64,000 nt of DNA from Anthoceros angustus (GCA_010909165.1 MU008163.1:1240001-1304000); one strand, 5' to 3'; numbered from the stretch's first letter, positions 3,986 through 40,887 are shown. The notes: a model not told the origin generated them from the sequence alone. Program-made: numbers and translations.

Positions 3986-4009
3986 ATGTGCATCAAGCAG
4001 ACGAATATC

Positions 4010-4330: not shown

Positions 4331-4586
4331 GCTTGCTAAAAACGACTATCGCACTTGTCTGCAATGGGCTTGAATTGAGAATTCGAATGCGCATGACGCG
4401 GAATCTCTTCATCGTCTGCTGGAGGTCCTGCTCCTCCACCTCAACGCTGCTGCTGTGAGATATTGTACATGTGTGGTCACCGGAGTGTTTGCACCTAAGC
4501 ACCAGTTTGCAAGCAAAGCTTCTTCTTCCGCACACAGTCTGATATTTAGACGTTTGTTGCTGGAGCAGGAACAGAAGCAATCCAGT

Positions 4587-4847: not shown

Positions 4848-6286
4848 GTGACCTCAATCTGGATGGTGTCAGTGCCTTGAAATGTGATCTACTTTCACAT
4901 GCTTTGACATAATTCACGGCAATTTCGATCAGGAGAGGAGCGAATATCTGAGGCGACACGTGAAAAGTCTGCAAGAGGGGGTGTTGTCTGAATTTGACCA
5001 GGCACGCAACGGCAAGGAGTTGCACCGCAGAGGAGCAAGAGTGCAGGACTTATTTGAGGAGCACTTTCCAGACTACTCGAGCAGATCCAAATCTGCTTGA
5101 ACAAATGTCCCGCCCTCTTTTCCTTGATCAGCGCCACCATGCACTACTGCAATGATCTCCTATTCTTGTGCTGCTGCTATTGTGGAAATGTACAGAGGAA
5201 GAAATGATGCAGCTGCTGCTCTCGTTCACAATTCCTATTGTTCACCATCCCTCCTGTTCACAAGTCCTCTTGTTCACAATCCCTCCTGTTCACAATTCCT
5301 CTTGTTCACAATCCCTCTTGTTTCTCAATTCCTCTTCCTCACTTCACAAGTTCTCTTCTTCACAACAAAATTGCTCCTGGCCAAGATTGATCTTGTCCAA
5401 ATTTGCTGCAAACGCGCGGAAGGGTAACTTGGGGCAAGGAAGTTCGGAAAGGAGATTCCAAGCGCACACCGGATTATGGACATGGTTTTCAGGCAAACCC
5501 TCATTAGGACACGATTGGTGAGAGTCGAGCGGCGGTACTGGTCTGTGTGGTGTGGAAATCGGAGGCGCTCCGGCGGTGATCTAGGTTTTTTCGTTTAGGT
5601 GCATTCTTGTGTTTTTGTGAGAGCTGCTGCAAATCGCAGGCTGGAGAGGTGCGGCTGAAGAAATTCTGGGCTAGCTCGCGACAAAGGAGGTAGATGCAAG
5701 CAGGGATTGGGGAAGGCATGGAAAGTGTGAGAAAGCAGCAGAGAAGCAACAGATGAAGCGGAGAGTGAGGTGGACAGCTCCTGGTGCAAGGGTGTGAAGA
5801 AGAAGAGGTGCCGGAGGCCGATAGCCTGCTGCTGCTGCTCGTCGGCAGCGGACACGGGCGTCGTGGGACCGGTGGTGCAGACTTCATGGAGAGCATCCAG
5901 CAAGACATCAACTCCAGCATGAGAGGAATTCGCATAGACTTAAGACTTAAACACTCTGGATAGAGCAACAAGTTAACTATCCAGGCACAGCCTGGCCGAG
6001 TTGTTTCGAGTTGTAACCAAGTTCTGTCATAAATGCCCGACTGATGGCCAGGGAAGTGAGGTTGGAGATACCTGGGCCCTTGCTAAAACTACGGACAGCC
6101 CCCTGGGAGACAGATTCTTCATGGCACACTGCCTTGAAACTGCCCGCCGGTGATACCCTCGAAAGTCATGTAGCAGCATAGATGCAATCTTCTGTTGAGC
6201 CAGCTCCCAGACTGCCGCGGCAGAGAGGCCAGTGCTAGGCAACTAGGGTTGCTTACCCAACCTGTAGTACATGTAATCGATTGCTG

Positions 6287-7543: not shown

Positions 7544-7689
7544 CTGGGACCTGGCTCTGCGCTCCCCTCGCGCTGCTGTTGTTGTTGGTGGTGCCGGATA
7601 GATGACAATGAGGACAAGGTTTTATAGGGACGGAGGCTATAGGGACGGAGGCCCTGACTGGGAACTTCACATAAGGAAGACCTACTTGA

Positions 7690-7830
7690 AAGTTTTAGCA
7701 AGTCCATGGTAGGAGCCAAAACTAGAAATTTGGCCATTGTGTTGAATAAGTTTTCTTCTTCGTCCTCCTCTCACACCTGCTATCAACACTATCTATGTAT
7801 ATAGGTTGGCGGATTGGGAAACTTGTGTAC
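7690..7830 (+). pseudogene. NRPB4 intron 4/exon 5 remnant upstream of the F-box gene
   Basis: GTAGGAGCCAAAACT and CTGCTATCAACAC..AGGTTGGCGGATTGGGAAACTTGTGT resemble 37935-38045 and 1768-1860. Confidence 0.5.
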
Positions 7831-7939
7831 CGTCTCAAGTTCCCAAATCGAGGATGGAACACGGAGAGTTATGTCTTTCAAATTTGGGGCCTTCCCGTGA
7901 CCGTCGTCAAGTGTTCATTCTAACAGGCTTGCAAGCAAA

Positions 7940-12345: not shown

Positions 12346-14077
12346 TTAAAAGCCCTGCCCGCAATGTGAAGTTTCTGGATGGGTCGAGAATTGCTCGTGA
12401 ACTATCTACTGCCGGGACACCCTTCCACAGCAAAGCTAGTTCTTCGAGCAAGGGTTGTAGGTAGATATCCATATTGCTCACCTGGGAGGGGCCCGGGATA
12501 ATAAGTGGCATGAGAATGCAAGTCTTTTTTGGTGACATCCATGGTGGAAGATTGTGGATTTGCAGCAGAACAGCCATATGGAGTAAGAGCAGGACTGGTG
12601 GCCGCCAGGATTGAGGCCATCGGTAGAAATGCCAAGCCGAATGTTGCGGCTGTCCATCCCGAAATTGTCCTGGGCATCTAGAGCTTGCCAGGCCGGGGTG
12701 TCAGCCAGAATGCGCAATTTATGATCTGGGCTTCGGGCGGTGTGATGCCAGGACATTAGCTGTGCAAGACGCGGGCACATGAACATTCGCCAAAGTCTTT
12801 CCACAAGTGGAAAATATAACAGTATTTTGCGTGCAACAGGCTTGCTCCGTGGCACGGATGGAGCATGCCGTGGTTCCCCACACTGGGGGACACTCAAGCT
12901 CTTCAGCCAGATCACCCCAGAAAATACAGCGGTCACTGACGCAGGCGTCCACACGATGATAACTGTGACCGACCTGCAGCATGAACTTTTTTGCAGCTTG
13001 CCGAGAGGCTGGCATGGAATTGGGCCGCGGCAGCAGAATTCCGAAGCCATCTGAAAGAGAGCAGTCATTGCGGTATCTGATATGGCAAACCTATCCTGGA
13101 AATTGAGCAAAGCAAGAGTGGCAGAGAGCTCTGTCTCTGTGCTCTGGCATATATGCAGCCTCGACCTTCCAGAGGGGTGTGGTGGCAAGGGCGTTGAGGG
13201 ATGCCTTCCAGCGGTCGTCAACACCAGCAACCAAGGTATAGTCCGGCCCTGGCGGTGGATCTGACTCCTCGCACTCAGGTGGTGAATTGGGGGGCTCCGA
13301 ATCCTGAGAGGGGAGCCCCCCATCGCCAGTGGCTGGTGGGACGGGGACCAACCCTGGTTGCGCAAGCGCGACATCCGGCTGTCTTCGGATAGCGACGTCC
13401 CTGAGAGCTAAACCTTGCGTGCACGACATGTTATGTGTGAGAGCAGCAATAGTTAGAAGAGATCGACGCCCGAGATTTGGTTCAATCCAATTCGGGCAAT
13501 TTGGGGAGAATGATTGCGTACCCGCGATCCAAGGAATGTAAGCCAACTTTGGACATGGCGCCTAGAAACGTCTGCCCGCTGTCTCGTCTGGAAGGGTTCG
13601 CACTCGGGGCAGGGACCATACATGCGCAGAATCTGCCTGTCTCGGACCGGGCCTTCCATGGCTTGCAGGCTGACAAACACGGTGCAGAAATAGGGGCTGC
13701 CCCTCGCTAAGTGCCCTTCTGCTCGACTGACTGCAAATGCACCGACCCAACGGATATGCCCGGGGTACAAGCCCATTCTCGCTTACCCAGTAATGTGCAA
13801 TGTCTGGGTAATGAGCAATGTGTGCCCATGGCCAGTCAGCTCGGATAGGGTGTTCCGTCACCACGGATGGCAAGTGGTCACATATGATGTGCTTTAGCTT
13901 TCGTGAAGCCTGATTATAACGTGTATGAGCACTGCATCAAAAAAATACTAACCTGACTTGCAACCAAAATGCACGGATGAGATAGCGCGTCCTTCGACCT
14001 GGTGGACGTCAAATGAGAAAGACAAGAGACATCCGTGAAATAGGCCACGTCTTAAAGGCCCTTGCATTGTAGTAGTG
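12346..14077 (-). mobile_element. Truncated CACTA/En-Spm element (tnp2/Transposase_21 relic)
   Basis: Frameshifted DSRNIRLGISTDGLNP..SYSIW / HNLPPW..LIIPGP..DIYLQPLLEELALLWKG and a CPECxx transposase-associated segment. A CACTACTACA terminus lies on the minus strand, ending at 14077 at the junction with the PME module. Confidence 0.88.
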
Positions 14078-16429: not shown

Positions 16430-17586
16430 TGTAAGTTTGTCGGGTTTGTTTCTTTATGTCGCTTCAGAGTAACTCCTAATAGAATATCAGTCTATTTATA
16501 TCTGCTTCAGAGTAACTCCTATTAGAATATCAGTCTAGTTTAGTTAGGCAACCCCTACACTCCAAGAGTCACACCCTTTCGGGGAGACTATAAGACATGT
16601 TATAAGCCAAGTACAACACCTAATTAATTCACTTTTTCTCTTTATGTTTACAGCATCACATCCACTAATCTAATATGGTATCAGAGCACTAGGATAGATG
16701 CTCGCTCCTAATGGCTAGATCTAGCGCATACAACTACCTTGGTAGAGATGATCGAACTCTACGTTAGACTGTGGGTCGAGACCATTCTCAACCTTTTTTG
16801 GTCGGCAGAATGGATTGACTACACCATCCTTTTGGATGCTACAATGATGTCCCGAATATAACATCCCTATGTGTTTGCCCACGCACTCACACGAGTCTAA
16901 GCATCGACATCAAATGGCTTAGCACCTAGGCCAAGCAATTTGTCTAAGAAATTAGGCTTAGCAATTAAGCATAATAGTCAGTTTGGTTAGGGTGGATTTA
17001 CCTCCTTAATTCTTTAGGCCCCTTCAAATCTCGTGATTTGATGGGCCACTAGCTCGACCCCTTCCTAGGATGGGAAAGAGGCATTTTGCCTCTTCTCTCC
17101 TATACCATCAGCTTCCTTGCTCTTCTCCATGGCCAGGCACTCACCCTCAAGAGCCCGAGGGCAACGTTCACAAGCCACACACCATGGACAACACCACCGT
17201 TGAAGCCACCCCACGAATTATGTAAATTTCGGCCTGTCATCGCACCTCGGTGGATGCGGAGCTTATCGCCATATGTTTTGGCGTTGCTTCTCAACAATTT
17301 TATTGTGCAGTGCCACTTCGAAGCCGTCCAAGCCAATAATCCTTCGTGCCTGATTTATCATCTTCACCCCAATCTCAATTGCAGATGTTCTAGCCTCGGA
17401 TGCCCTTCTCACGGATGGACAAAAGATGAATTTGACCCCAATCAGCCTACTGCATGGAGTGCTGGGATGGGCGACCCTCCCCATGATACTTCCGCACCAG
17501 AATTCGGAGGTTTCTAATTGAATTGTGCAGGAATAGGCGATAGGAATCTCAGCGCATGCCAGCCCAGAGGCTTGCTGCACACTGCA
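16430..17586 (+). mobile_element. 5' remnant of an LTR retrotransposon (putative LTR, tRNA-Met PBS, degenerate internal region)
   Basis: TGGTATCAGAGC at 16676-16687 is the canonical initiator tRNA-Met primer-binding site. It follows an AT-rich segment containing a 43-bp tandem duplication. The LTR start is approximate and no partner LTR was found. Confidence 0.6.
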
Positions 17587-18990
17587 GGGTGTAGGCCCGG
17601 TTAGGTATACCACATTTTGTGACATATGCAAATGTGCACTATGTGCTGCATATACGGCGAGTTTCGATTATCCAATATTTATATAGTTTGAAGTTAAGTC
17701 AAATTTGGAGCATGAACATGTCATGTACAAGAACTTGGGAAGTACGGCTCGGGCGTGAAGCCGTGGCGGTTTCGACTTCAGGAGCTCTCGAGGCGCCGCC
17801 ACACCATGGACAACACCACCGTTGAAGCCACCCACCTAATTATGTAAATTTCGGCTCATCGCACCTCGGTGGATGCGGAGCTTATCGCCATATGTTTTGG
17901 CGTTGCTTCTCAACAATTTTATTGTGCAGTGCCACTTCGAAGCCGTCCAAGCCAATAATCCTTCGTGCCTGATTTATCATCTTCACCCCAATCTCAATTG
18001 CAGATGTTCTAGCCTCGGATGCCCTTCTCACGGATGGACAAAAGATGAATTTGACCCCAATCTCGCATGGAGTCTTTGGGATGGGCGACCCTCCCATGAT
18101 ACTTCCGCACTGTAATCGGAGGTTTCTAATTGAATTGTGCAGAATAGGCGATAGGAATCTCGGCCACCAGGAGGCTTGCTTTGCCGAGTGTAGGCCCGGT
18201 TAGGTATACCACATTTTGTGACATATGCAAATGTGCACTATGTCTTTGCATATCTGGAGTTTCGATTATCCAATATTTATATAGTTTGAAGTTAAGTCAA
18301 ATTTGGAGCGTGAACATGTCATGTACAAGAACTTGGGAACTGAAGTACCGGCTCGGGCGTGAAGCCGTGGCGGTTTCGACTTCAGGAGCTCTCGAGGCGC
18401 CGCCACACCATGGACAACACCACCGTTGAAGCCACCCACCTAATTATGTAAATTTCGGCTCATCGCACCTCGGTGGATGCGGAGCTTATCGCCATATGTT
18501 TTGGTTGCTTCTCAACAATTTTATTGTGCGGTGCCACTGCCGTCCAAGCCAATAATCCTTCGTGCACGATTTATCATCTTCACCCCAATCTCAATTGCGG
18601 ATGTTCTAGCCTCGGATGCCCTTCTCACGGATGGACAAAAGATGAATTTGACCCAATCTCGCATGGAGTCTTTGGGATGGGCGACCCTCCCATGATACTT
18701 CCGCACTGTAATCGGAGGTTTCTAATTGAATTGTGCAGAATAGGCGATAGGAATCTCGGCCACCAGGAGGCTTGCTTTGCCGAGTGTAGGCCCGGTTAGG
18801 TATACCACATTTTGTGACATATGCAAATGTGCACTATGTCTTTGCATATCTGGAGTTTCGATTATCCAATATTTATATAGTTTGAAGTTAAGTCAAATTT
18901 GGAGCATGAACATGTCATGTACAGATGAACTTGGGAACTGAAATGGCTCGGGCGTGAAGCCGTGGCGGTTTCGACTTGAGGAGCTCGGGC
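17150..18990. repeat. Three tandem ~600-bp units, each consisting of flank plus the transposon left end
   Basis: GCCACACCATGGACAACACCACC starts each unit (~17175, ~17797, ~18401); each unit contains the TIR (17587, 18186, 18782). Confidence 0.92.
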
Positions 18991-19650
18991 GTGGCTGCCA
19001 CCACCATCGCCATTTGGAGTGTTCAGAGGAAGGGAGGAGGGTGCCCAACTCAGCCACAATGAGGTCCCCACGGTTAGAGGCCAGGCAGGCGCGGCGGAAG
19101 GGAGATCGGGCCAGCGCCGCCGGGGAGGACAGCCAAGTTCGGAGCCACCAATCTGCGAGGTGCGAGGTCGCCTGAGCTGCAATTGCTGGGGTTCGGGGCT
19201 TGCGTTTGCTGCCATGACCCTGCTCTGACAGCATCTGTGCCCACTGTAGGAAACGCCCACCTAGGAGCTCGGAAGCCAGGATGCGGACGGCCTCCAGGTA
19301 TGATTGCATGTTTGGAAAGTTTAGGGTGCGATTGGGTGAGGTGGTGATCGTCAAGTGCAAGGCCTCTTACGCCCAAGGTGGGAGGCACCTCTAAGCTCAT
19401 GTCCCGAGACCCGGCTTGTGGAGCCCTCCTCGAGCCCAGGCTGTGGTTTGGGGCCAGGACATGGGCCTCGTCTGCACGGCGAGAGCTGCAGATGGCGGAG
19501 GACAAGGGGCAGGCCGTCGCGATGGGGACTTGGCCAGCTCGGTAGTAGTGGCCAGCTCAAGGCAGTGCTCGGAGTGCTTTTCATGCTGCAGATGTGGATG
19601 GTGCTTGCTGTCTGCCTAACCGTGCTTTCCATTTAACTTAACAGTGGTCC

Positions 19651-22600
19651 TTGATGTGGGTTGTGTGTGCGAGGAATTCATCTAAGGCGACGTCCGAGCT
19701 TGAAGAAAGCGAGGACGCCAGATGTGGAAGACCACACTGTGAGGGGAGCTGGGCACTCATCCGCAGAGTGACGAGACCGGAGGTGAGGTGGAAGCGACCT
19801 CACCGAGGTGCCCAAGCCAAGTGGCGATCCATGGAATCCAAAAGTAGGGCAGCGGAAAAGCGGAGCCGGAAAGGGAAGGAGCGCCGAGCAGCAGCAAAGA
19901 GAGCGCTTCTGGAGGGAATATGGGCAGAAGCGAAAGAGCCCATGGCAAGATGGACATGGAGGGCGGCTGATGGCAGCATCCGTTGTGCTGGGGTGGATGT
20001 CAAAGACTTGGGGCTCGCAAATGGACTGAGGGAAATGTTGGGGAATGAGGAGGTGGAGAAGCTTTTTGGCCCCCCCAGTTTTAACGAGGGGCATGGTTGG
20101 CGGGGAACTGCTGCCCTCAGCGAAGAAGAATGGAGGGAAATTGATGTTCTTGTTTATGGCATGTACGAGTTGAGGCCCAGCTTGGGGGAGAAGCGGATCC
20201 CTAGGCTTATGGCCCTTGGGATTGCGCTGGAGAAACTTGCTGGCGTTGAGGTGAACTGGAGGGTGTTTCACGAGAAGACCCAATCCGGAAGGAATAAGAA
20301 GAAATACGAGAGGAAAGCGGGCGGGCGGTGAAGGCTGCAGGAGTCAAGGAGGAAGAGCCCCTACTCATTGTAGGGAAGCCCACAGGACATGAGCAGCAGC
20401 CACCTCATGGTAGGATGTGCTTGTTTTTATTTTGTCTCCAAGGTTGTCTAACATGCACGATTTATCTTCCTGTTCCGCATGCAGTCGCTAAGTCCTCTAG
20501 ACTACCTAGTATCCTCTAAGGAGCACCTGTGACGGCCCTCCTTGTCACCAACCTTTTGACATAGTGTAGGCTCATGTGAAGTGCACCATGCACTAGCTTA
20601 TCCCGTGAACTCGACTGTTGTTGAGCGACATGTCGTCGCACCTAGTCATGTCTGTTTGTTTCTCATCCGCTTGGTGTGCCCAATGTCAGTTTATCTGCAG
20701 TTTGTTCCACCTGTGTGTACAAGGCCACTTTGCTCGCACTCGTCCACTCACATGTGCGTTGCACCGATCATTTGCTATGTGTCATCTTCCACTTCGTGCC
20801 CAATGTCATTTTTCCGCACATTTGTTCCACCTGTGCACAATGCCACTTTGCTCGCACTCGTCCACTGCCACATGTGCATTGCACCCTCGTCATTTGCTCG
20901 CCGTCTTCCACTTCGTGCCCAATGTCATTTTTCCGCACATTTGTTCCACCTGTGCACAATGCCACTTTGCATGCACGTCCACTCGCCACATGTGCGTTGC
21001 ACCGATCATTTGCTCGTATCATCTTCCACTTCGTGCCCAAGGCCACTTTTCCTAGGCATATTGGTTCTACCTGGTGGCACAATGCCACTTTGCATGCAAT
21101 AATGTTCCACTGGAAGGGTGGATGGGTAACTTACTGGTGATGATCAGGTGAGGGCAGCACGCGAAGGAAGAGCAAGGTGGCTACCATCCTCAGCGACCAC
21201 CTGATCCGTATCGCTGGGGAGTTGACAGATGTGAATCTGCAACTTGACAAGGTGGATGCCACTGCAAAGGAGGTGAAGCAAGCATTGACTGGTGAAAAAC
21301 AGAGACTTGGGGAGGTGGCGTTCGACATCCGCAAGTGTTCTCAAGAAATGGAGATGGTGCAGAAGAGCATTGACGAGGACGAGACTTTTGAGGACATTCA
21401 AGGGCACAGATCCCTAATCAGCCACCTTTCGGGCCAGCTTGAAGCCTTGTACACTGGAGAAAAGCCCACCTTCGGGCCGCTTCAAGCCTTGTACACTGGA
21501 GAAAAGCACAGACCTTGGGTTGAGGAGTTAGCGGCAGAGGACTGCCGCCAACATGAGCTTGAGGCTTGCGTTGTTGACCGAAAGGAGGCGGATGTTCAAC
21601 ATCCTCAAGTCTCTTGCAGCATCATGGATGTTGAAGTGGAAGGGAGGCCTGGTCGCACCAACTTCCTTCCAGCGCCATTGAGCGGACGACCGCCAACAAT
21701 TGTGAATGCTTGCCCTATATGCGCAAGGTATTCTTTTTGCACCGGGCGGATCTGCTTTTCGAACGGTGTCCACCTTGTTTCTCATTGAGTGCGTGTCATT
21801 GCAGGTGGTTTGGCTGCAATGAGCGGTTTTGCTCGTCGGGCATATGTACCATGAATTTTGCCTTTTTCCCATTTGCACCAACAAGACATGTGCCCCGAAG
21901 ACTGCAGATGGATGTGGACACTGGTGGTATGTCGCAAAGGTTGGGACCTTCCAGCGCCATTGGAGCGAGGTGCAGTGAACAGCTCAAGGAGTGGAAATCT
22001 GAGTACCTTGAGCTGGTAAAGGATCCGGATGCATTGCTGTCCCGCCTTGAGAAGATCCGCCGTAGCCACCGCCAGGACATGCGGGCAGCAGCATCTCCAG
22101 GTGTGTGTAGAGGGGTGTGTGCCGAGGAATAGGGTTCTCCCTTTGCACCTGTGTTGCTTTCCCTCCAAAGTCTAATGCTATCATCGCGTTTTTTTCTGCA
22201 GCTTGCTATGAAAAAGCCGTCGGTGACAAGTGCCAGTCGCCGTGTTCCCATTCGGAACACGGCCACTCTTTTTGCCACCCCTGGCGGCGGCTCTTACGGC
22301 TCAGTTTTTGGCGTGCGGTCGAGAGCAGGGGTGCTTGGACCCCGCCCTCGGTGAAAAAAACGGCTCCAATGCAAGGGGGTCAATCTGGTGTAGGCCTCGA
22401 GAAGGTTGCAACAATGGAATTGCTGCAGGTTGATGACACCCACGCTGGAGCCGGATCACAGGAAGACCCAGTGGCTGTGGAACGAGGTGCAGTGTGGGGG
22501 GAGGCAGATCAGGAGGTTCATGGAGGTGATGACGTGGTTGGCGGCTTAGTGGACGACATCCAATCCCAAGCACTTGATGACTTTTACATGATGCGAAGTT

Positions 22601-24439
22601 TTGGACAACTTTGCAACAACGCCCACACGAGGCGGCGCCCAATGCGGAGGTGGAGAATGAGCCGCATGAGGTGAAGAAGGCCACATCCGAGGCGGGAAAA
22701 GGCCACACTTATAGTGGAGAATGCCACATTTGAGGTGGACAAGGACACATGAGGTGGATGGAGCTACCCGAGGTGAAGGCCACACCGGACAAATGCCACA
22801 CATGAGGTGGAGAATGACATAGCTCAGTTGAGAAGGCCACACTAGAGGTGGACAAGGACACGCTTGAGGTGGACATGGAGGGGCATCGTAGAGAAGGCCA
22901 CACCGACTGCACAATGCCACACATGAGGTGGAGAATGACACACTTGAGGTTGAGAAGGCCCCACTTGAGGTGGATAGGGACACACGAGGTGGAGAATGAG
23001 GACACATCTCATGAGGCGAAGGATGATGGACTGAAGTGGACAAGGACACATGTCGTGGAGCGGTGGGGTGGAGGTGTCGAACTGTCTGAGGCTGGAAATG
23101 TGAGTGGTGGGCAGGTTTGGTGCAAGATGGTAATAGTGAGGCCGCCGAGGGATGGGGACCCGCCCTCGGTGAAAAGCACTCCAATGCAAGGTCAATCGGT
23201 GTAGGCCTCGAGAAGGTTGCAACAATGGAATTGCTGCAGTTGATGACACCTGCGGGATCAGGAAGACCCGTGGGCGTGGAGCGAGGTGCGGTGTGGGGAG
23301 GCGGTCGGGAGGTTCATGGAGGTGATGACGTGGTTGGCGGCTTAGTGGGCGACATCCAACCCCAAGCACTTGATGACTTTTACATGATGCAGTTTTGGAC
23401 AACTTTGCAACAACGCCCACACGAGGCGGCGTGCGGTCGAGAATGAGCCGCATGAGGTGAAGAAGGCCACATCCGAGCGGAAAAGGCCACACTTATAGTG
23501 GAGAATGCCACATTTGAGGTGGACAAGGACACACAGGTGGAGAATGAGCCGCATGAGGTGGAGAATGCCACACATGAGGTGAAGGCCACACAGGCCACAT
23601 GAGGTGGAGAATGACATAGCTCAGTTGAGAAGGCCACACTAGAGGTGGACAAGGACACGCTTGAGGTGGACATGGAGGGGCATCGTAGAGAAGGCCACAC
23701 GACCGGACAAATGCCACACATGAGGTGGAGAATGACACACTTGAGGTTGAGAAGGCCCCACTTGAGGTGGATAGGGACACACGAGGTGGAGAATGAGGAC
23801 ACATCTCATGAGGCGAAGGATGATGGACCAAGTGGACAAGGACACATGTCGTGGAGCGGTGGGGTGGAGGTGTCGCACAGGCAGCGGGAAATGTGAGTGG
23901 GGTGGGCACAGGTTTGGTGCAGCATGATAATAGTGAGGCTGCCGAGGGGATGGGGACCCGCTCTGGGAGTAGAGGCACGGAAGGCTCCAAAGACGACCAA
24001 ACCGAAGCATTCATCAAGACCGAAGACTAGTCACTTGTCCTCGGGAGTGCGAGAGTTGGAGCCTGGAGACAACTATATGGTACGTGCGGAGCCAGGCAAT
24101 GCAGAGAACGTTAAATTCTACCTCCTCAGGTGTGTCGAGGGTGTTCGCAGACTCGAAGCACGGCATGAAGACAAGTTTTGGAAGGGTCGCCCAATTCGCA
24201 AAGGCGCTGAGGTTGTTGAAGGTAATTATTATGTGGAAGTAGGGCCCGGGCTATACCAGCTTCTGAACAAGGAGAAGCTTGGGCAACTCTCTGCGTGCGG
24301 TGCATCGCGTGGCCGCAGCCAAAGTCGATGCCGGAGCGGACATGGATCCCACAACAAGAAGGACAAGCCCAAGTATTGGGTAAGCCCTACAGTGCTGGCC
24401 ACGCTAGAGGAAGCCCTAGAGGCACATGTCAAACGCTGA
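19651..24439 (+). CDS. Second gene of the transposon, frame-disrupted as sequenced: basic N-terminus, coiled coil, RING-H2-like finger, acidic heptad repeats, conserved C-terminal domain
   Basis: ORF pieces at 19651-20331, 21177-21727 (coiled coil, then CPICAR), spliced GT 21728/AG 21804 to WFGCNE..GHMYHEFCL..CP, an EVENDTL/EVDKDTH repeat array, and 24050-24439 LEPGDNYMVRAE..FYLLRC..VEGNYY..KPKYWVSPTVLATLEEAL. Gene boundaries are approximate. Confidence 0.6.
20640..21100. repeat. ~119-bp tandem repeat x4 (probably intronic)
   Basis: GTGCCCAA recurs at 20676, 20796, 20915 and 21033. Confidence 0.88.
22340..23960. repeat. ~820-bp tandem duplication containing a ~21-bp GAGGTGGAGAATG-type minisatellite
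   Basis: CCCGCCCTCGGTGAAAA..GTAGGCCTCGAGAAGGTTGCAACAATGG occurs at ~22340 and ~23160; the copies differ by small indels. Confidence 0.88.
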
Positions 24440-24894
24440 ACTGTAGGTGGCTAGACAACCGGACAATGGAGAGACTAGAAAAGACACCGCTTGACATACT
24501 TGATAGAATGCTGGACAATTTTGAAGTGCTTCATCAGAGAAACAATAGCGCCTCCCGCATGTACACAGGGAGAGCCTTCCTTCCAACACACACCACGCCT
24601 AAACACGCAAGAACAAACATGGGCCAGGAAATAACGAACTTCTCCCAAACACTAGATGGCCCTTTTCTTGGTCCCTTCTTAGAGACTAGCTTGACTTCAC
24701 TGATTGTGTATCCTCATCATCCTCGGTGGGCCACCGACGACGCGTGATCACCGACGCCTCGGCCGTGGCGACCCTTTCCGCATCGCTGCCGGATCCGGGT
24801 TGCCGCATCACCACCAAATGACTACGCAAGTCTTCCGGACACTTGCCCGAGGGTCGCCCGAGCCATGAATGGTCTCCGCCTACCATCTCGCATC

Positions 24895-25080
24895 CGCCAT
24901 CGCACCGACACCGCGCACCGCCATCGCACCGACACCGCGCACCGCCATCGCACAACACCGCTACCGCCATCGCAGCAACACCCGCGCCATCGCACAACAC
25001 CGCTACCGCCATCGCAGCAACACCCGCGCCATCGCGACACCGCGCCATCGCACAACACCGCGCCATCGCGACACCCGCAC
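24895..25080. repeat. GC-rich minisatellite (CGCCATCGCAC(A/C)(A/G)ACAC) between the two convergent genes
   Basis: Repeated CGCCATCGC core, about 10 copies. Confidence 0.85.
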
Positions 25081-25341
25081 TGACGTGGCCATGACTCACT
25101 TGCATCAATCTTTGGCTCTTCCAAGGTCTTCCACGAGATGGGGTTTTAAAAGGCGCTTAAGTTGGGCATTGTCACCCGCAAGGTCGCAAGTCAAGCAAAG
25201 TGCTCCGGATCCCAAGCGGAGTGGAGCGGGTCATCACGTGTGAATATGGCCACATCTTGAGCAACCACCATGGTATTTACAAGTTCGTCAAGGTCATTTC
25301 AATTTCGTTCGGCATATGTACAATTGAGGCCTTAGAGTCGA

Positions 25342-28300
25342 CTACGAAAACACAAATGGGTTGGTTTCCCTCCTCACAAGCTCCTTAAAGGACTCGACCG
25401 TGTCCGAGTCAAGCACATACACTAATCGGCCTCCTTCCACGCGTTCCAAAAGTGGGAACTTGCAGTCTCCACGAGGATGAAAGAAGGGTGACCTCCGACC
25501 TCATGATCCAAAGTGTACACACAACCATCCGGCTCAACCCGAGTAGTATCGCCACAACCACCTTATCCTGGAGGAAATTTTGTCCGCTCAGGGACGTGGT
25601 AATGTGCTCGTGGTCACATGCACCGCAATGCACTTTGCCAAATAAAAGTTGAACCTTCGCCTCGGATCTCGTGACGCACCACAAAGTTGTCTCCAAGCTC
25701 CAAGAGGTGCAATTTCGAGACATCTTCACTAGCAACACCATTAGCGCAGGATCGGTGGCCCATCGGACCAACCGCATGTAGCGACATGGTGTGCGCCGTC
25801 TCGACCACCAACGCCTCCCTCTTGTCCGCCCCGAGTAATCGAATGCCATATGCATATAGGGCACGCCTCACATGCTCCATGGTCACCGCCCCATGCACAA
25901 AGACAAAAACACGCAAGATGCCGCATCTTGAGCCGAGGGTTGGTTGCATCCATGAGTCACCATATATGCTGGCATGCCTTTAGAACCCGGATTGGTGCAC
26001 ACCCCACCGCTGCCTGCGGTTGACTTCATTCTTTCCCACCAACCAAAAAACCCTTTGCACCTGCCTTTCTCCACTTGCATAGGAGGATGCAGCCCCATTG
26101 GATATACTGGACCGCAGGAAGTCGACAACGTCCGCGGCACTCTGCAGCCTTGTCGATGAAGGTGACACTCTTCGGCACGTAGTGCCCTCTTTAATATGGC
26201 ACCGCCTCGTGCTCCCCTTTCCGTGGCTCGACCCAAAATAGCTCCACAAAGATTCTCGCATCCTCCGGTTAGACTTGGGTACCGCCACAAAATAGCTTGG
26301 TCCTTAAAGCTGGCACCATCCGACCACATCCAATGCTCGTGGACTCTTGTATCCATTTGACAAGAGCTATCCCAATGTAGCATAAGGGCATCTTTGGACA
26401 AAGAGAGTGTCATGCATGTCATCACTAATGTAAAAGTGGTAAAACTTGAACATTACAGGGTCCTCCTCCACCACCGGCCCATCCGCATATATGTAACATG
26501 AACTAGAATAGTAACTTGATCACTATGCGATTGCATTGATTGTATCTCATTCGAACTTGAAAAGCATAGTTCGAAAAGTCCATAATGAAACTATCACATC
26601 CTCGAAACCAATCAATGCACTCAAACCTGTGGCTTGCCATCTTTGGACGTAGTCATGTGAAATGAAAGCAGTCAATTTATCCTTAAGAAATTCAATCATC
26701 GCCGACGGATGGGTTTCCCTGTAAACTAGCTTTATTCTGGACTTGGAGGTTCCGTCCTCATTCACTCCCACCTTCTGATATTCGAAGCACCGCCACTTCA
26801 GCTTCATCTCCGGCAAAATGCTTGTGAAACCTCCTTAGGACAGAGGGCCAGCTTGGAAACTCCACAGACGCTGCATTTACCAAGCAAACATTTTCGCCTA
26901 TGCCAGTCCTCATCTGGTGCTCTAGGGCATAAAATAGAGTGCACCATCTCTCGGACGGATGAAAACATCTCCGGCAAAATGCTTGTGAAACCTCCTTAGG
27001 ACGGAGGGCCACTTGGAAACTCCACAGTGCATTTACCAAGCAAACATTTTCGCCTATGCATCCTCATCCGGTGCTCTAGGGCATAAAGCAGTGCACCATC
27101 TCTGGACGGATGAAAACATCTCCGTCGCGTGGCACTTGTCCCCTCCTCGGGTTCCTCTCCACACACCCACGGTACACGTGCACACGAGGTGCACCTTTGA
27201 TGTGGCACGTGAAAGTATTCGTAGCGTCTTTCAAAATGCCATCTCGACATGGTACCGCAACAATGACATTTCTCTCTGTGGATTTGATGAAGAAGGGCTT
27301 CTCGAATGCTCGTTGGCCAATCTTGATATCCGGATTCTCCTTTGAAAGCGCAAAAACTCCGTCGCACATCACTCACGACAATGTATGCTCGTAACATCTC
27401 CTCTAAAAGCTGGGACACCAAGATGTGACCAAACAAAGTAGATAGAGTGGAGCGGTCAAAAAGGACACAGAGCCACATGAAGTGCCCCACTCACAAAGTG
27501 TGAGCCTTGTATATCCTCGAGTGAACTGAGCTACAAGAATGAACATTGCACGCAGAGCAAATGATCAGGAGCCATGGCAAAGGAGCGGGCCAATGATCGA
27601 GCTGTGGCAAATGAGCGAGCAGGGAACGACCAGAGCGAGCGAATGAGAAGGAGCCGAGCAAATGAGCAATAGCTGCAAATGACTGGAGCGAGCAAATGAC
27701 AAGGAGCGAGCAAATGACAAGGAGCGAGCGAGCAAATGAGCGAGTACAAATGACCGGAGCCGAGAAAATGAGCAATAGCAGGCAAATGACCATGGAGCGA
27801 GCAATGATCGTGGAGCCGGCAAATGACCAGAGCAAGAGCAACTAAACAAGAGCTGTGGCAAGCATGGCGCAAGCAAAGAGATGAAGCGGTCAAGCAGCCA
27901 CGTGAGGAAACTCGAACATGCAGAGTGCAGTAAAGAAGCTACTGTGTCATCACATATAGTGATGATCCCGGCTTGAAACAAGTTAAAGGGTTAGTGGCGG
28001 TGTTCAATTGCAAGAATAGACTAGCTTGCACTGGCAAGGAGACGCGCCACCACAGCAGCGCCAAAGGGAAGCAAGAAAGAGAAATTGCGTGAATCGAATC
28101 ACCTGAGAGGTATCTAGGAAATGGATGATGTGCGTGCGGAAGACAAGAGGAGCCACCAGTCGCCGCCTCGCATCCTTGGAGTTGGAGGAAGGCCTTGACG
28201 CCGACTCCCAAAATTGCAAAACAGCTTCCTTAACCCCTTGGGGCAAACAATCGAAACGAGCCTTCCGTCCCCACCCACACCAGCGCGCCTCCTCTGGTGC

Positions 28301-29850
28301 ACTTTGCAAATCGCCGGGTTTGAAGATGGCGTGCCACAACTCTTCTTGACCCCAAGGACTCGGCCCAAGCCCCAATTGCTTGCCTCACGCCGTTAGTTAG
28401 CACAATATTCATAAAGGTTTGTCTTGCCTTCAAGTGATCGACGCTTGTACACTCCAGCTTTTCATGGCCGCCGATGTTTGAGCGAGGGATGTGGCTTCGA
28501 GCCTTCACCCCTACGAACAGGGAAGAATTCCTTGAGGCCACGAAGCTGGAAAAAGCATCTAACACCTTAGCCTTGCTATCGAATTGAAGTGGGCAGTTCT
28601 ACAACCGAAAACGTGGCCAAGTTCTCGAGCAATACGCCCACATTGTGCATCACAGCCCCATCACGACTGGTGAGATCCGCCCCTTTGCCGTGCACGGAAT
28701 CGCCTTGACCGCTCTGTGGATGAAAGAGGACCTGGTGCTGTTTGCCCTCGTAGACTAGTTCCCTCCTCACTCATTGAGGGTTCTTCATCCGGAGAAGCTG
28801 CCTCACACCCACCCTCTGCCGTATGATTATCACCGTGACAATCCTCCTCCATGCGAAGGACTGCTCCTGCCTCTTGCCTAACATCCGCTACGCACAAAGA
28901 TGCTCCATCTTCCACACGCAAAGATGCAACTCGAATTTGCTTTTCCCTCCACCGGCGCTTCCAGGCTGCGTGTTTTGCTCTCCTAAGTGCACCCGAGAGG
29001 GAGGCGCTGCTGGAGCCATTCAATTCCCTTGCCTCGGACGGGCTCCCTTCCGCCTCCTCGTGCACTTTGCAAATCGCCGCGGGTTTGAAGATGGCGTGCC
29101 ACAACTACTCTTGACCCCAAGGACTCGGCCCAAGGCGCTCCATTGCTTGCCTCACGTCGTTAGTTAGCACAATATTCATAAAGGTTTGTCTTGCCTTCAA
29201 GTGATCGACGCTTGTACACTCCAGCTTTTCATGGCCGATGTTTGAGCGAGGGATGTGGCTTCGAGCCTTCACCCCTACGGCAGCGGGGAAGAATTCCTTG
29301 AGGCCACGAAGCTGGAAAAAGCATCTAACACCTTAGCCTTGCTATCGAATTGAAGTGGGCAGTTCTACAACCGAAAACGTGGCCAAGTTCTCGAGCAATA
29401 CGCCCACATTGTGCATCACATGCCCCATCGACTGGGTGAGATCCCTTTGCCGTGCAGAATCGCCTTGACCGCCTGTGGATGAAAGAGGACCGTGTGTTGC
29501 CCTCGTAGACTAGTTCCCTCCTCACTCATTGAGGGTTCTTCATCCGAGAAGCCGCCTCACACCCACCCTCTGCCGTATGATTATCACCGTGACAATCCTC
29601 CTCCATGCGAAGGACTCGCCTCTTGCCTAACATCCGCTACGCACAAAGATGCTCCATCTTCCACACGCAAAGATGCAACTCGAATTTGCTTTTCCCTCCA
29701 CCGGCGCTTCCAGGCTGCGTGTTTTGCTCTCCTAAGTGCACCCGGAGAGGGAGGCGCTGCTGGAGCCATTCAATTCCCTAGCCTGCTCCGGACGGGGCTC
29801 CCCTTCCTGCCTCTCCTCCCTCTCGCAGCTCACAGTACTGGGCACATGGT
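25342..29850 (-). CDS. Sola-like DDD transposase, frame-disrupted as sequenced
   Basis: In order on the minus strand: FWESASRPSSNSKDARRR..HFLDTSQ; NPDIKIGQRAFEKPFFIK.TERNV; DFS(E)NY..NEIQSM..QVTILVH; YHFYISDD.HDTLFVQ; WMWSDGA..FK; WSYFGSSHGKG..AILKRAL; LELGDNFVV..KFPLL..YVLDSDTVESFKELV, with a stop at 25342. The 5' limit is approximate. Confidence 0.75.
26806..27120. repeat. ~160-bp tandem duplication inside the transposase
   Basis: CATCTCCGGCAAAATGCTTGTGAAACCTCCTTAGGAC occurs at ~26806 and ~26966. Confidence 0.85.
27585..27850. repeat. GAGCGAGCAAATGA minisatellite (probably a transposase intron)
   Basis: Many degenerate copies of GAGC(G/A)AGCAAATGA. Confidence 0.85.
28298..29780. repeat. 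~760-bp tandem duplication in the 5' part of the transposase
   Basis: TGCACTTTGCAAATCGCC..GTGCCACAAC..CCCAAGGACTCGGCCCAAG occurs at ~28298 and ~29061, with downstream homology throughout. Confidence 0.9.
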
Positions 29851-30999
29851 TCACACACGGGCACCGAGCGCCTCAAGCGCAAAGCAGGCTGGTGAAAGGT
29901 CTCGCAGGCGTGAAGATGGCAGGTTATGCTCTCATCGGTGACAAGTGCCGCACCAACATGGGTACTTACCATCTTTTGAAAATCCCGCTTAGACAAAACT
30001 TTGAAATACAAACAAGTTCACTTTCGTGTTCCATGTTCACTTGACGGTTTCGTTTGAAATTCGCGGTACAACTTTGAAATTCCGCTTATTCCAAACTTTG
30101 AAATTTGAACAAGTTCCAACTTCATGTGACAAAGACTCACTTTTAGTGTTCTGTGTTCACTTGACGGTTTGCTTGAAATTCAAATGAGCTTGGTTGTGTG
30201 TCTTGTGCTCACTTTTGTATCCAAAGCTCACTTGTCCATCCATGATCAAGTAATTAAATACCAAATGCAAAATCATATCCTTAAGATCCGGCATTTCTGT
30301 GGACTTGTTGCCATGCTCTTAGTTTTGGGAAAAACTTGAATCACTTCGATCATTATTCTAGCGAGAAGAGTTTTTGAAGGTAAATATGTCCACATGTGGA
30401 CATATTTCCACGTTGCGTCCGTCCCCACATAATGTGGTCTACCTAACCGTGCTTGCACCCTGCACCAGTGGGGGAGAAGCAACCGCCTCCTATGTGCGCC
30501 ATGTAACTGGTCGTGGTGCCGGAGCAACACATACGATTTATGGCCTTGTGGCGTCTGACAACGCAGGAGCGGCCCTAAGTTGGGCGCCCACACCACCAGT
30601 TCATGGGGCAAATCGGTGGCCCCGCTGATCGAACCTGTACACGGTCACCTGCCGCGCCACCAAGTTAACGGCACGGCCATTTCCGGACCGACGCGCGCTG
30701 TTGAGGTAACCCCTCCACCAGGTTATGTGCCGGTTGGGGGGGGGAGTTTCCACCTTCACCTAATCTATCAATTCCGGATCTTCTACCGCCGATTTCTACC
30801 TCGACTCGTGGATTGGCTTTGAGAATTCCAGCTTGTGAGACAATCACTATCAAACAGGAAATCAAAGACCAGCCTAACGAGCAAGACCCTTCAAGAATGT
30901 ATATTCCGCTTACAAATTCAGTGGTAGGATATGCTACTCCAGCATATGTATGGTCCTTAGATAGAAGGCTAAATGCTAAACATATAGAAGGCCAAAGGC

Positions 31000-35683: not shown

Positions 35684-36937
35684 CTAATCTTGCATCCAGC
35701 GGCCAAATTCCAACCAAGGATGGAGGCCGTAGTAGCTCTTTCTCACAAATTCCTTGCAGGGCAAGGAAGGAAGCCACCTCCAGCTTGGAGGCGTGTGTCG
35801 GAAATCGAGAGCCGCAATCTGGTCCACCTTGTCATGGGCGATGTATAGTTCGTCCAGTCCCGCCACAAGCTGCAAATGAGACAGGACTCTCCTCCGGAAC
35901 ATGCCTTTCCCCCGCAACATGCCTTTCCCCTGGAATCGAGTGAACATGTGGGAGGGCATGGCGTCCACCACGGTCCAGGCCATGCGCGCGAAGTCCATTT
36001 CTAAAATGGACAAACTCGACTCAATGCAGGCCGCGCAAAGCAGCCGGTCCCGCACGTTGATGAGGTTGGAGTACAAGGTGTCCAAGACCGTGGGCTTGGC
36101 TACGACCACGCAGCTCCAGCTGGCCCGCTCCAGGTCGTAGGCCAGCAGATTGCCGTTTGCGGTGAAGCAGTAGAGCACGGTACGCACAAACACTCCGTGC
36201 CCGACCAAGGGCGCGGGGGTAAACCAGAAGGGAAAGTCGCGGCACGAGGGCAAGCCCTTGGTCGTCACACTCCAGCTCCCAACCGCGGAGTCGAACACAA
36301 AAGTCGGGCATTCTTGCTCCAGATCGTTCACTCCCACCAGCTTGAAGCATTTGGCCACGGCGTCCACGAACACGCCCCGCACATGCCACAACCGCATGCC
36401 ACTCGGAAACGGCGGCAGAGAGGCCCAGGAGCGCGCCACCGGGTTGCCGATGTGCGCATACATCAGCCGCGCCGGATCCTCCGGATCAGGATCCCCCGCC
36501 CGCCGCGGTTGCAAACTACACACCAACATGCCGCCGCCCGACCATGCCGGGGCCAGCTCCAGAGTGGATACGGAGCGGGAGAGCATCGTTTTGCGGTCCG
36601 GTAGGGTTCGCAGCCATGGCGGGAGTTGGAGCTGGTACCAGCGGTCGGAGGCGGGGTCGTAGGCGTACGAGGCCATGGCCCTCCCCAACCCCGACTCGGA
36701 CGACGGGCAACGGCCTGCCACCACCAGCATCCAATCCTGCGCTCCCGCTCCCAATTCCACCCGCTCCTGCAACAAGCCCGACCACTCCACGTTCGCCTTC
36801 CACCCTCTGCACACCGCACTCGATCTAATCAGGCTCACCAGCGGCAGCCGAGCTTGAATCTTGGCTGCAACTTCGTCCGGCAGCTCGCCGTTCCTCCAAG
36901 GAGCGGAGACCTCCTCTTCCTTCGCAATCGCATCCAT
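35684..36937 (-). CDS. Intronless F-box protein (~417 aa), paralog of 6287-7543
   Basis: ATG at 36937 (MDAIAKEEEV..). LPDEVAAKIQARLPLVSLIRSSAVCRGW, YDPASDRWYQL, LLAYDLERASW. Confidence 0.9.
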   Translation of the reverse strand: MDAIAKEEEVSAPWRNGELPDEVAAKIQARLPLVSLIRSSAVCRGWKANVEWSGLLQERVELGAGAQDWMLVVAGRCPSSESGLGRAMASYAYDPASDRWYQLQLPPWLRTLPDRKTMLSRSVSTLELAPAWSGGGMLVCSLQPRRAGDPDPEDPARLMYAHIGNPVARSWASLPPFPSGMRLWHVRGVFVDAVAKCFKLVGVNDLEQECPTFVFDSAVGSWSVTTKGLPSCRDFPFWFTPAPLVGHGVFVRTVLYCFTANGNLLAYDLERASWSCVVVAKPTVLDTLYSNLINVRDRLLCAACIESSLSILEMDFARMAWTVVDAMPSHMFTRFQGKGMLRGKGMFRRRVLSHLQLVAGLDELYIAHDKVDQIAALDFRHTPPSWRWLPSLPCKEFVRKSYYGLHPWLEFGRWMQD

Positions 36938-37375
36938 CTCGGACCTTGCCCTGCCCTCACCTCGCACCGCTGCCAGATTGTATAAGGGCGCAGGCCCTGG
37001 CTGGAACGGGAGGACCTACTGTATCTTTTTATCAAGCCCGGAAGCGCAACCAGCTCTCATCGAGCCCGTCATAGGAGCCAAAACTGGAAATTAGGCCATT
37101 GTGTTGAATATTACCATGACTAATCAGTGCCCTAGAGTGTTGTGACACTTTACCGTTTTAACATTGATAAATACAGTGACACAGTAACTTTTAGGTAATA
37201 ACAACCGAAGACTGTTAAACCTCGAGGCTTAGTTCAAGAGCGTGCGGTAAAATGGTACGTTTTTCAGGTTTGTCTGCCCCGCCCTTCCGGCTCCCTACCC
37301 GTGACGGGTTCGGTTTGGATTCAAAACAAATTTAGAACTGCAATCGTTTTGTGATTGAAGAAAGGAGGGGGGCCG

Positions 37376-38872: not shown

Positions 38873-39808
38873 TCAGTAGCAGATGTGATCTCCGACAACT
38901 ACGTTAGGCTTGGGCCGCAAGAGCACGGGGCATCGATTGATTACGGGAACGTGCACGTAGTCGGTGGTGTAGACGGACACACCATCGAACTTGGCATCGC
39001 TCTTCGGAAGACAGTCTCTCCTTATCGGGGCGCGCGTTGGAACGTTCCATTTCTGGAAGTCGTGGTGGTAGGTTGTCTCTGGATCAAACGGCCCTTTGCC
39101 AATAAAGACGTTGGCACCATAGATAACAGGCGTGGCTCGCTTAGCCAGGGCCTTGGGCCCGAAATCTGCCTGATGCGTGGTGACCCCGTAGAATGGGCCG
39201 GACGACGCCAGCTGGTGCACCGGGCCCTTTCTCACGGGCTTGATTCCCTTGGATTTGTCCGTGAAATCCACTTTGTAAGTGGTGTGATCGTCGAAGGCCC
39301 CTGAGAAGTATTCGTTGTTTTGAGGCCGCATCAACGCTCTGGCGCAGCCAGGGTGCTTGGGGAAGTCATTCCTGTAGGTGGTGGTGTCATCGAAGGGCGC
39401 AGTGTTGGGGTCTGGGCCTGGAGGCCTGCGAATAACCTTGGGAGGAAGGGCGTGTTTCTTGTACCGATCGATGTACTCAGAATTGGGATCCTTGTAGTGC
39501 TGGCCCATAGGCATATTATACTCCAGGCTGGGGCCCCCTTTGTTATAGGTTACCTTTTCCGGGAGTCTCTTCTTGTCGAAGTCTGAGACGTATGTCGTGG
39601 TTCCATCGAACTTGGCATCGTTCTTCAGATTCTCCTTAGGCCTGATCTTCTTGTGCTCCGGGAGAGGCCATTTGGGATACTTGTGGATGTACTCGGACAT
39701 AGTATCCTTGGCATAGTGAACCAAGGACGAAGTGTGCTTCACCGGGCAGTGGTGAAGGCCGCAAGTGCACAGGGTGCACATGCACATGCGGGATCCCGCC
39801 TGATCCAT
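38873..39808 (-). CDS. SAXO: SAXO/FAM154 (STOP domain) microtubule-stabilising axonemal protein, 311 aa, uninterrupted ORF
   Basis: N-terminal CMCTLCTCGLHHCP and repeated Mn-type motifs (KFDGTTTYVSDF, PFDDTTTYRNDF, AFDDHTTYKVDF, PFDPETTYHHDFQKW, KFDGVSVYTTDY). First ATG at 39808. Confidence 0.9.
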   Translation of the reverse strand: MDQAGSRMCMCTLCTCGLHHCPVKHTSSLVHYAKDTMSEYIHKYPKWPLPEHKKIRPKENLKNDAKFDGTTTYVSDFDKKRLPEKVTYNKGGPSLEYNMPMGQHYKDPNSEYIDRYKKHALPPKVIRRPPGPDPNTAPFDDTTTYRNDFPKHPGCARALMRPQNNEYFSGAFDDHTTYKVDFTDKSKGIKPVRKGPVHQLASSGPFYGVTTHQADFGPKALAKRATPVIYGANVFIGKGPFDPETTYHHDFQKWNVPTRAPIRRDCLPKSDAKFDGVSVYTTDYVHVPVINRCPVLLRPKPNVVVGDHICY

Positions 39809-40887
39809 GGCAGCGGACACGGCCTTTGTCAGTCAGTGCACACCTCGGGGCGATCCAGAACGAGATGATTGCAAAGGAAACGGGGGATGGAAAACCTACA
39901 TGCTTCGACGCCTCGCATTTCTGACTTGAATCAGGCATCCTGGAGGAGGAGCTGGAGGAGGAGAAACACGCGCTTTTCAGCAAAACCCTGGCAGTTGCAC
40001 GGCGCGCTGGCTGATGAATCTGTGTCCCTGATTATCATGAAAATTGGCCACCGGAAGAGGAGTTCGCGCTTTCTTCCGTCCTTGATGCGGTCCAGTCCAG
40101 CAGCCGAAGTATGAGATTGGTTAGGTCCTGGAGCCGAACATCCCTCTTCTTCGGCCGGGGGATTGCTCCGGGAAAGATGTATGCAGGTATTTCCACCTCC
40201 GACATGTGTTCAAATCGTTCCCAATGCGACACGGGCGCTCTGTCCTGCAAACAGAGCGCAAGAAATTTTCACCAAAGAAGCGCAAATCCGGCTTGCAGGA
40301 ACACTGCTAGCCTCAAATCACACGTAATCTGCACAGGAAGGGTGGAAGATATGCACGCGCACCGCTACAAGTGAGGAATCCGCTCTTCCTTAAGAAGCTG
40401 CGCGGCAGATACTCCCGGCACGCAAGCCTGAGGGTGAGGCGAAGGAGTGTGTCGAGCCATTGCGTACTTTGACGCTTCAGGTGAGCGCCACGAAAACCGA
40501 CCTCTCCGGTTGACCGAAGCCGGTTATCCGGTAACAGTCCAGTGATGGGTGATAAAAAATCCCGTTATTAGACAGAAGTGTCTCAACAATGTGGTGACCT
40601 ATATCCTACCAGCCGTCCAGACGAAGGTCCTCAAGCAGAATGGTAGCCCCTCAAGTTGGGTAGGGTGCTAGATATGCTGTGAGCACGAATGCACTGAGAA
40701 ACAAAAAGAAGTTGAAGGTCCAATCCACTACGACGGAGTTGCTTGTATGTATATCCACGAATTCTTATCCTCCTCTCCGTTGCTGTGCTTATTGGTCACC
40801 TTGAGCTCAACAAATGCAGACCTTGCACAAAGACCTGTATAGGACTACTTTACAATTGCCGGAAATAGAGAGTGCTGTTCAGACCAC

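Follow-up and report, generated by a model that had tools for sequence, protein, structure and literature searches.

Positions 17587-30460 of a 64,000-nucleotide stretch of the genome of the hornwort Anthoceros angustus (GCA_010909165.1 MU008163.1:1240001-1304000; hereafter the window) most probably hold an old, inactive copy of a Sola2 cut-and-paste transposon from a land-plant lineage with two convergent genes. One gene encodes a DDD (triple-aspartate) transposase with a C-terminal barrel domain, and the other encodes an accessory protein in which a conserved N-terminal domain precedes a coiled coil and a RING-H2 finger. The locus had been singled out by an original prediction, made from sequence alone, of a giant two-gene Sola-like transposon in a land plant. 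We found the same convergent layout in all seven loci with enough flanking sequence (the window and six others), and it is conserved across at least three bryophyte lineages.

The transposase survives as a pseudogene on the minus strand (25578-28309), 25 to 45% identical to its relatives. On that strand it comprises a region of N-terminal homology (28052-28309), a Cys-rich region in which the coding sequence carries a 160-bp tandem duplication (26805-27124), a catalytic core (26001-26834), and a truncated C-terminal domain (25578-25720). The core motifs, among them those on which the original prediction had relied, are there in decayed and frameshifted form: DFSNY (26580), EIQS (26548), SDDMHD (26426), SDGASFK (26323), HGKG (26225), and GAILKR (26203). 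These motifs fall in alternating reading frames within 380 bp, at the spacing of intron-free relatives. Given that this spacing leaves no room for introns, the core contains at least five frameshifts as assembled, a count whose exact value is uncertain. In-frame stops occur besides the frameshifts, and every motif is shorter than in the family. The first two Asp residues of the DDD triad are readable (in DFSNY and SDDMHD). Alignment with an intact relative (L001) places a shift of frame after HGKG and a residue other than Asp at the third catalytic position, whereas relatives keep the full triad. The copy still belongs to the Sola2 family, as a pseudogene. Pfam models matched neither the transposase nor any large open reading frame (ORF) of the element. 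L001 aligns along the window transposase from 28246 down to 25584; matches to the Sola2 family are confined to 24.0-28.3 kb, and no second transposase copy was found elsewhere in the 64-kb window.

Assignment of the transposase to the Sola2 group is supported by comparison of its motifs, and those of its relatives, with published reference cores. In the supplement of Majorek et al. (2014), the core of Sola2-1_HM reads GDFAENYTF..DEIQSYHW..CFISDDITHD..FTDGCAGQYK..WNFFATSHG, that of Sola1-1_AP reads FDLEKVL..YSDNCGGQNRN..ERGHT, and that of Sola3-1_HM reads KDYCQKV..SDNASSY..CRGKD; two dictyostelid Sola2 transposases contain MDFKENI, FSDVLNH, FWSDGAKHFKS, and YHGKSDVD (PMC3627910). We scored motifs in the 62 relatives of at least 480 amino acids. 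The Sola2 motif D[FY][AS]EN[YI] was present in 58 of them, a SDDxxHD-type motif in 56, DG[CA]xxQ[FY]K in 58, and H[GA]KGxxD in 61, with EIQS in 32 of the 62. The window holds decayed versions of these motifs in the order seen in the relatives. Neither the Sola1 core (FDLEK...SDNCGGQNRN...ERGHT) nor the Sola3 core (KDYCQK...SDNASSY...CRGKD) was found in any of the 62 relatives or in any frame of the window. The sequence flanking the element, TGCA, is not of the AWWT type, the target duplication that is a hallmark of Sola1 (PMC3845634).

A HMMER search with the longest clean piece of the transposase (95 amino acids) returned 65 matches, mostly fragments, the best of them 41 to 45% identical; two (P0026 and P0031) are repeat proteins and were discarded as false positives. 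L001, a Logan contig, contains an intact three-exon transposase gene. Later searches brought the relatives into the hundreds, among them a 774-amino-acid protein of Ceratodon purpureus (M758_1G230800; P0161), two proteins of Calypogeia fissa (P0198 and P0211), LOC131074642 of Cryptomeria japonica, and proteins of Taxus chinensis and Adiantum nelumboides. The Ceratodon gene takes 4.8 kb to encode its 774 amino acids. Because intact relatives (L001 and Ceratodon) have introns, the introns suggested for the window element are plausible. Public annotations list the Ceratodon, Calypogeia, and Cryptomeria genes as hypothetical or uncharacterized host proteins. Other transposons adjoin some of the relatives. 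In L004, a Ty3/Gypsy chromovirus with gag, reverse transcriptase, RNase H, integrase, and chromodomain (1517-6120, minus strand) sits just upstream of the Sola2 transposase. In three JGI metagenome contigs (L015 at 5862-7855 on the plus strand, L016, and L019), a CACTA transposase (Transposase_21, DUF4218) stands directly upstream of a Sola2 C-terminal fragment, an arrangement that probably reflects nested transposons.

The second gene of the window element proved to be real; it lies on the plus strand, is convergent to the transposase, and occupies the stretch from there toward the left end. In related loci, the first exon of this accessory gene has at its end the conserved block ...G[IVL]xLE...VNW..., and the second exon encodes a coiled coil and a zinc finger of the form C-x2-C-x12-13-C-x-H-x-Y-H-x2-C...C. 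A profile of the N-terminal domain, built from three of these loci (L003, L004, and L006), matched the window ORF at 19642-20328 (plus strand) with an E value of 3e-9, the next best of 2,491 ORFs scoring 2.7, and recovered the exons of two loci on which it had not been trained (L005 and L007). This domain, which ends in ...GIALEKLAGVEVNWRVF..., has no Pfam match, and neither do the other plus-strand accessory ORFs. A word-indexed protein search with the 226-amino-acid first accessory ORF was likewise blank, a result we attribute to the limits of that tool because the profile from related loci later matched. Beyond a 119-bp tandem repeat of about 3.5 copies that separates the accessory exons (20628-21098, plus strand), an ORF at 21177-21788 (plus strand) carries the coiled coil, an NFLPxP motif, and, at its end, the first zinc-ligand pair, NACPICAR. 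Roughly 100 nucleotides further on, in another frame, lies the rest of the finger, GHMYHEFC...ADGC (21823-21975, plus strand), which was the top window match to the RING profile (E = 0.011; 2,491 ORFs). An X-bridged reading of the finger scored 20.9 bits, and none of 1,000 shuffles exceeded 9.8. BLASTP and tblastn comparisons of the related RING exons with the window gave nothing significant; only the profile and the bridged reading did.

Across five loci of the RING family, C9, C12, C26, H28, H31, C34, and C50 are invariant. Compared with the PDB, the finger profile found RLIM (E = 2.9e-6), followed by RNF13, Arkadia, RNF4, and RNF165, all of them RING-H2 E3 ligases. Judged by its sequences, the family has both the ligand pattern of RING-H2 fingers and a likeness to known RING-H2 domains. 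Given the matches of the window to the N-terminal profile, to the RING profile, and in the bridged reading, we infer that its second gene is a decayed member of this conserved accessory gene.

Two matching accessory exons lie downstream of a Sola2 transposase, on the opposite strand, in each of six related loci: three in the ENA assembly ERZ25073694 (L003, L004, and L005), one in Ceratodon (L006), one in Calypogeia (L007), and one on a JGI metagenome contig (L017). The layout is thus not peculiar to the Anthoceros locus. The RING exons of the three loci from one assembly are 36% identical, and these loci keep gene order and orientation while their flanks differ. Three loci also have a Pre-SET/SET (SUV39-like) domain, encoded on the strand of the RING gene in the interval that separates the RING exon from the transposase (L003:14955-15284, L004:11784-12890, and L017:3204-3491, all minus strand). 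Pfam confirmed the SET domain (E = 4.5e-15), and two diverged loci preserve the same linear order of transposase, SET gene, and RING exon. This stretch may represent a gene or exon for a histone-methyltransferase-like protein that the transposon carries. Even by themselves, the two genes of the related loci cover between 8.5 and more than 14.8 kb, so that the lineage is large even without duplications of the kind found in the window.

Both genes of the window copy lie between terminal inverted repeats (TIRs). The left TIR (17587-17621, plus strand) and the reverse complement of the right TIR (30426-30460, minus strand) agree at 30 of 35 positions, just as had been predicted, and bound an element of about 12.9 kb. 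The TIR sequence is GRGTGYARGCMCGGTTAGGTAKACCACAT, and its core, GGTTAGGTAKACCACAT, occurs four times in the window compared to 0.02 times expected from shuffles. When the region of the element was scanned for 16-nucleotide inverted ends with identical 4-bp flanks, 17587/30460 was the sole pair, with the candidate target-site duplication TGCA at 17583-17586 on the left and 30461-30464 on the right. The outer ends read GGG...CCC, and short TIRs with ends of the GRG/GAR...CYC type, as expected of Sola2, are present. Of the GGG and GAG starts originally reported, GGG belongs to the outer end, and GAG was traced to two inner copies of the left TIR (18186-18220 and 18782-18816), each directly 3' of TGCC. 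These inner copies belong to an array of about three tandem copies of an approximately 597-bp unit (17178-19007, plus strand; units 88 to 93% identical) that spans the left end. Some 410 bp outside the outer TIR (17178-17586) reappear within the element at 17800-18185 and 18404-18781, and both recurrences lead into another TIR copy (at 18186 and 18782). The right end shares only the TIR part with the 597-bp unit. On the simplest reading, a segment lying across the insertion junction was later triplicated to give the array; no junction but the outer one agrees with the right end in TGCA as well as in GGG/CCC.

Sola2 relatives end in a domain of about 125 amino acids with the consensus ...GDNFAV...VDFYIL.C...G..YYQK.... 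The window contains two copies of it: the truncated one at the end of the transposase (25578-25720, minus strand), and a better, open copy that ends the accessory reading (24017-24440, plus strand). The six related loci have this domain on the transposase only. From 50 sequences, AlphaFold (AF2) predicted a barrel made entirely of beta strands, with a mean pLDDT (predicted local distance difference test score) of 78.7. Foldseek found nothing for this model at E <= 0.001. The top rows of a VIA-align comparison were ORC1 BAH, Tudor, DNMT1 BAH1, and MTA1 BAH, with Z scores of 4.8 to 5.1, a level that the tool itself rates as background. We take this as a hint, no more, of a chromatin-reader (BAH/Tudor) fold. 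The plus-strand copy is either characteristic of the hornwort branch or the product of an inverted duplication at this locus.

Several observations weigh against our reading of the locus. It rests on one copy with one candidate target-site duplication, and TGCA is a palindrome that contains G and C, unlike the AT-rich duplications published for Sola2. Searches of L003 to L007 turned up no convincing pair of TIRs with a target-site duplication; a 36-nucleotide inverted pair in L005 and a 26-nucleotide pair in L003 were inspected as ends and rejected. An exact TIR scan of the metagenome contigs gave 0 matches; the JGI contigs of relatives found on several contigs represent the same loci from many samples and are too short for both ends. 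The RING finger of the window requires a change of frame and has Val at the Cys-ligand position before GH, and Pfam RING families match all members of the accessory family, yet below their curated cutoffs. The Sola2 call itself is a motif comparison with published reference cores rather than a tree with Repbase sequences. That the transposase belongs to another superfamily (Sola1, Sola3, KDZ/Zisupton, or CACTA) is nevertheless very improbable: the Sola1 and Sola3 cores are missing from every long relative while the four main Sola2 motifs occur in 56 to 61 of them, and neither Transposase_21 nor any other CACTA model of Pfam matches this transposase, whereas a separate CACTA fragment at 12478-13374 does match Transposase_21. 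The boundaries are less secure. TGCA is its own reverse complement and hence indistinguishable from a 4-nucleotide extension of the TIRs (counting it in, the inverted match is 39 nucleotides), so it may lie within a 39-nucleotide TIR that has no detectable duplication. Since the sequence beyond the outer TIR is repeated within the element, the functional left end might also be an inner TIR (18186 or 18782), or the 597-bp unit might be a native subterminal repeat, which would put the true left end at 17178 or further out. TGCA-flanked ends are, moreover, known from a single case, and the inner TIR copies are preceded by TGCC, not by TGCA. We consider such a misreading unlikely, given that the outer junction matches the right end in GGG/CCC and in flank, that the array fits a later triplication across the junction, that the 597-bp unit apart from its TIR does not recur at the right end, and that Sola2 elements are known to make 4-bp duplications. 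The predicted TGCA duplication thus stands as an identical flank on both sides, and its status as a duplication is qualified by the palindrome, the single case, and its possible membership in the TIR.

A different kind of misreading would concern the second gene. If the RING gene were an ordinary host gene that adjoins domesticated Sola2-derived genes, its presence in the window would be a chance capture; the failure of searches around the related loci to find TIRs that enclose both genes, and the annotation of the Ceratodon and Calypogeia genes as ordinary proteins, would both agree with this. We judge it improbable, because in the window both genes stand between TIRs, three diverged loci of one assembly share order and orientation despite different flanks, and the RING gene is present in all seven loci with enough flank. 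Somewhat closer to the balance, though still rather unlikely in our view, is the idea that the plus-strand barrel (24017-24440) was never part of the design of the accessory gene and arose by rearrangement within this decayed copy, the transposase 3' end having been duplicated in inverted orientation. The restriction of the domain to the transposase in the six related loci, the abundance of duplications in the element, and a 30-nucleotide inverted repeat, 87% matched, that links the two barrel copies all point in that direction. On the other hand, the other duplications in the element are all direct and tandem, none of them inverted; the plus-strand copy is an open frame of 180 amino acids that fits the family profile better than the truncated copy of the transposase; and beyond the 30 nucleotides the two copies have diverged in DNA, so that any duplication is not recent.

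Five direct tandem duplications, 82 to 93% identical, account for about 3.2 kb of the 12.9 kb. Besides the 597-bp array (three copies), the 119-bp repeat (3.5 copies), and the duplication of about 160 bp in the Cys-rich region (two copies), there are two copies of an approximately 820-bp unit, 88% identical and rich in 21-bp/7-amino-acid acidic repeats (22341-23967, plus strand), and two copies of an approximately 765-bp unit, 93% identical, over the 5' part of the transposase and the region upstream of it (28286-29813). Without them, the element would measure about 9.6 kb. The predicted size of 12 to 13 kb therefore holds for the span, with the reservation that these 3.2 kb are duplications internal to this copy. 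Five duplications in one element is an unusual density, which suggests that tandem duplication is favored locally or across the genome. With its frameshifted core, its third catalytic position and a RING ligand lost, and its five tandem duplications, the copy as assembled is inactive and cannot move by itself.

We compared the element with known systems. Sola was described in 2009 as a group of DDD transposons with 4-bp duplications (Bao et al. 2009). A review of plant transposable elements lists a Sola1 from Physcomitrella, the TIR families recently active in plants include Sola, and a 2026 preprint ranks Sola2 first in abundance among the DNA-transposon superfamilies of the conifer Cupressus. 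Dictyostelids have two-gene elements of 10.3 to 15.3 kb that combine Sola2 with Fanzor1, with multi-exon genes (Bao and Jurka 2013, PMC3627910); their ends read GAG/GAA...CTC/TTC, and their 4-bp target-site duplications are AT-rich (AWWT, ATAT, and AAAT) (PMC3627910). The Ectocarpus element Sola1-1_Ec32, published in 2025, is 21.5 kb long, and its opposite strand bears a ParB-methyltransferase gene; comparable proteins of green and red algae are cited in the same paper (PMC12477816). The view that Sola2 elements are small and have a single ORF is contradicted by the dictyostelid elements, and a still larger Sola1 element is on record; nor are plant Sola elements an undescribed lineage. Given that both the size and the possession of two genes had already been published for Sola, the grounds for novelty offered by the original prediction fail, while its Sola2 assignment is upheld by the motifs in the long relatives and by GRG ends that agree with those of dictyostelid Sola2. 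The new part seems to be the conserved identity of the second gene, a predicted RING-H2 protein joined in some branches by SET. Among 39 papers that mention Sola2, we found none describing a RING or SET accessory gene; Repbase and Dfam lay outside that search.

The closest likeness in the transposase is to Sola2-1_HM of Hydra (RNase H-like family E.12 of Majorek et al. 2014). Intact relatives share its core motifs in order and wording (DFAENY, EIQS, SDDxxHD, DGCAGQ[FY]K, and HGKGxxD), and TIRs, a 4-bp flank, and GRG-type ends are common to both. The present elements differ in belonging to a plant lineage with introns, in their conserved second gene, in a single flank that is TGCA and not AT-rich, and in the C-terminal beta-barrel of about 125 amino acids, which is also found on one animal-like relative (P0040). 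The dictyostelid Sola2-Fanzor elements (DFa-1/2/3 and PPa-1/4/5) resemble the hornwort element in pairing Sola2 with a second multi-exon gene, in their size of 10.3 to 15.3 kb, and in short TIRs; the 4-bp length of their target-site duplications is that of the candidate duplication TGCA. Their second gene is the TnpB-like Fanzor1 and their duplications are AT-rich, whereas here the partner is a coiled-coil RING-H2 protein. Sola1-1_Ec32 is likewise a giant Sola element whose opposite-strand accessory gene has domains pointing to action on DNA or chromatin, but it belongs to the Sola1 group and its cargo is ParB plus an amino-methyltransferase, in place of RING-H2 with SET or a beta-barrel. Plant DNA transposons with two genes include PIF/Harbinger (a transposase and a Myb-like protein) and the VANDAL/Hiun Mutator-like elements (a transposase and the VANC anti-silencing factor). 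These too couple a transposase with a conserved element-encoded helper; the helper proteins are unrelated, and the RING protein is known from its sequence and not from a role in transposition or anti-silencing. We know of no RING E3-like helper in PIF/Harbinger or VANDAL elements. The fingers of RLIM, Arkadia, RNF13, and RNF4 match the accessory profile at E values of 2.9e-6 to 5e-3 and share its pattern C-x2-C-x12-13-C-x-H-x2-H-x2-C. The accessory family differs from them in a last ligand pair spaced C-x4-C in most members and in Pfam scores below the cutoff, and the window copy is short one Cys.

By analogy with Sola and other DDD/E elements, an intact transposase of this lineage would bind the GRG-type ends, excise the element, and reinsert it with a 4-bp duplication. 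The accessory protein, to go by its fold and family, may act as, or like, a RING E3 ubiquitin ligase. Its targets would probably be chromatin or host silencing factors, since sister lineages add a Pre-SET/SET domain and the accessory reading of this copy ends in the barrel of the transposase. Tentatively, and with more doubt than confidence, we propose that land-plant Sola2 forms a separate lineage of two-gene elements, which already had a RING-H2 E3-like protein of its own before the bryophyte lineages split and still carries it, with SET added in some branches and the barrel in the hornwort branch, and that this protein may act on host chromatin or silencing factors as a counter-silencing or targeting E3, a role not described for plant DNA transposons.

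The rest of the window contains ordinary plant genes and one further transposon. F-box genes with an At3g26010-like beta-propeller flank the region of the element (6287-7543 and 35684-36967, both minus strand; Pfam F-box-like, E about 1e-5). The CACTA/En-Spm transposase fragment at 12478-13374 (minus strand; Pfam Transposase_21, E = 2.9e-12) belongs to a different DNA transposon 4 kb upstream. An ORF at 38873-39820 (minus strand) has repeats of SAXO1-2, a stabilizer of axonemal microtubules (E = 5e-11), which fits a plant with flagellate sperm, and a tRNA gene lies at 55450-55523 (plus strand; Rfam RF00005, 69.6 bits).

The Anthoceros copy itself is ordinary genomic debris, and its value lies in the lineage behind it. 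The Sola2 lineage with a RING partner spans hornwort, moss, and liverwort genomes, and probably fern and conifer genomes too; in public plant genomes, its genes ought to be marked as belonging to a transposon. Transposon helpers that touch chromatin are rare, and they shed light on how transposons and host silencing compete. Those known include VANC in Arabidopsis and the ParB-methyltransferase genes of algal elements, and an element-borne E3-ligase-like gene would, if true, be a new entry among them. Given that intact copies and genetics exist in Ceratodon and Physcomitrium, the idea of an E3-like helper could be tested there.

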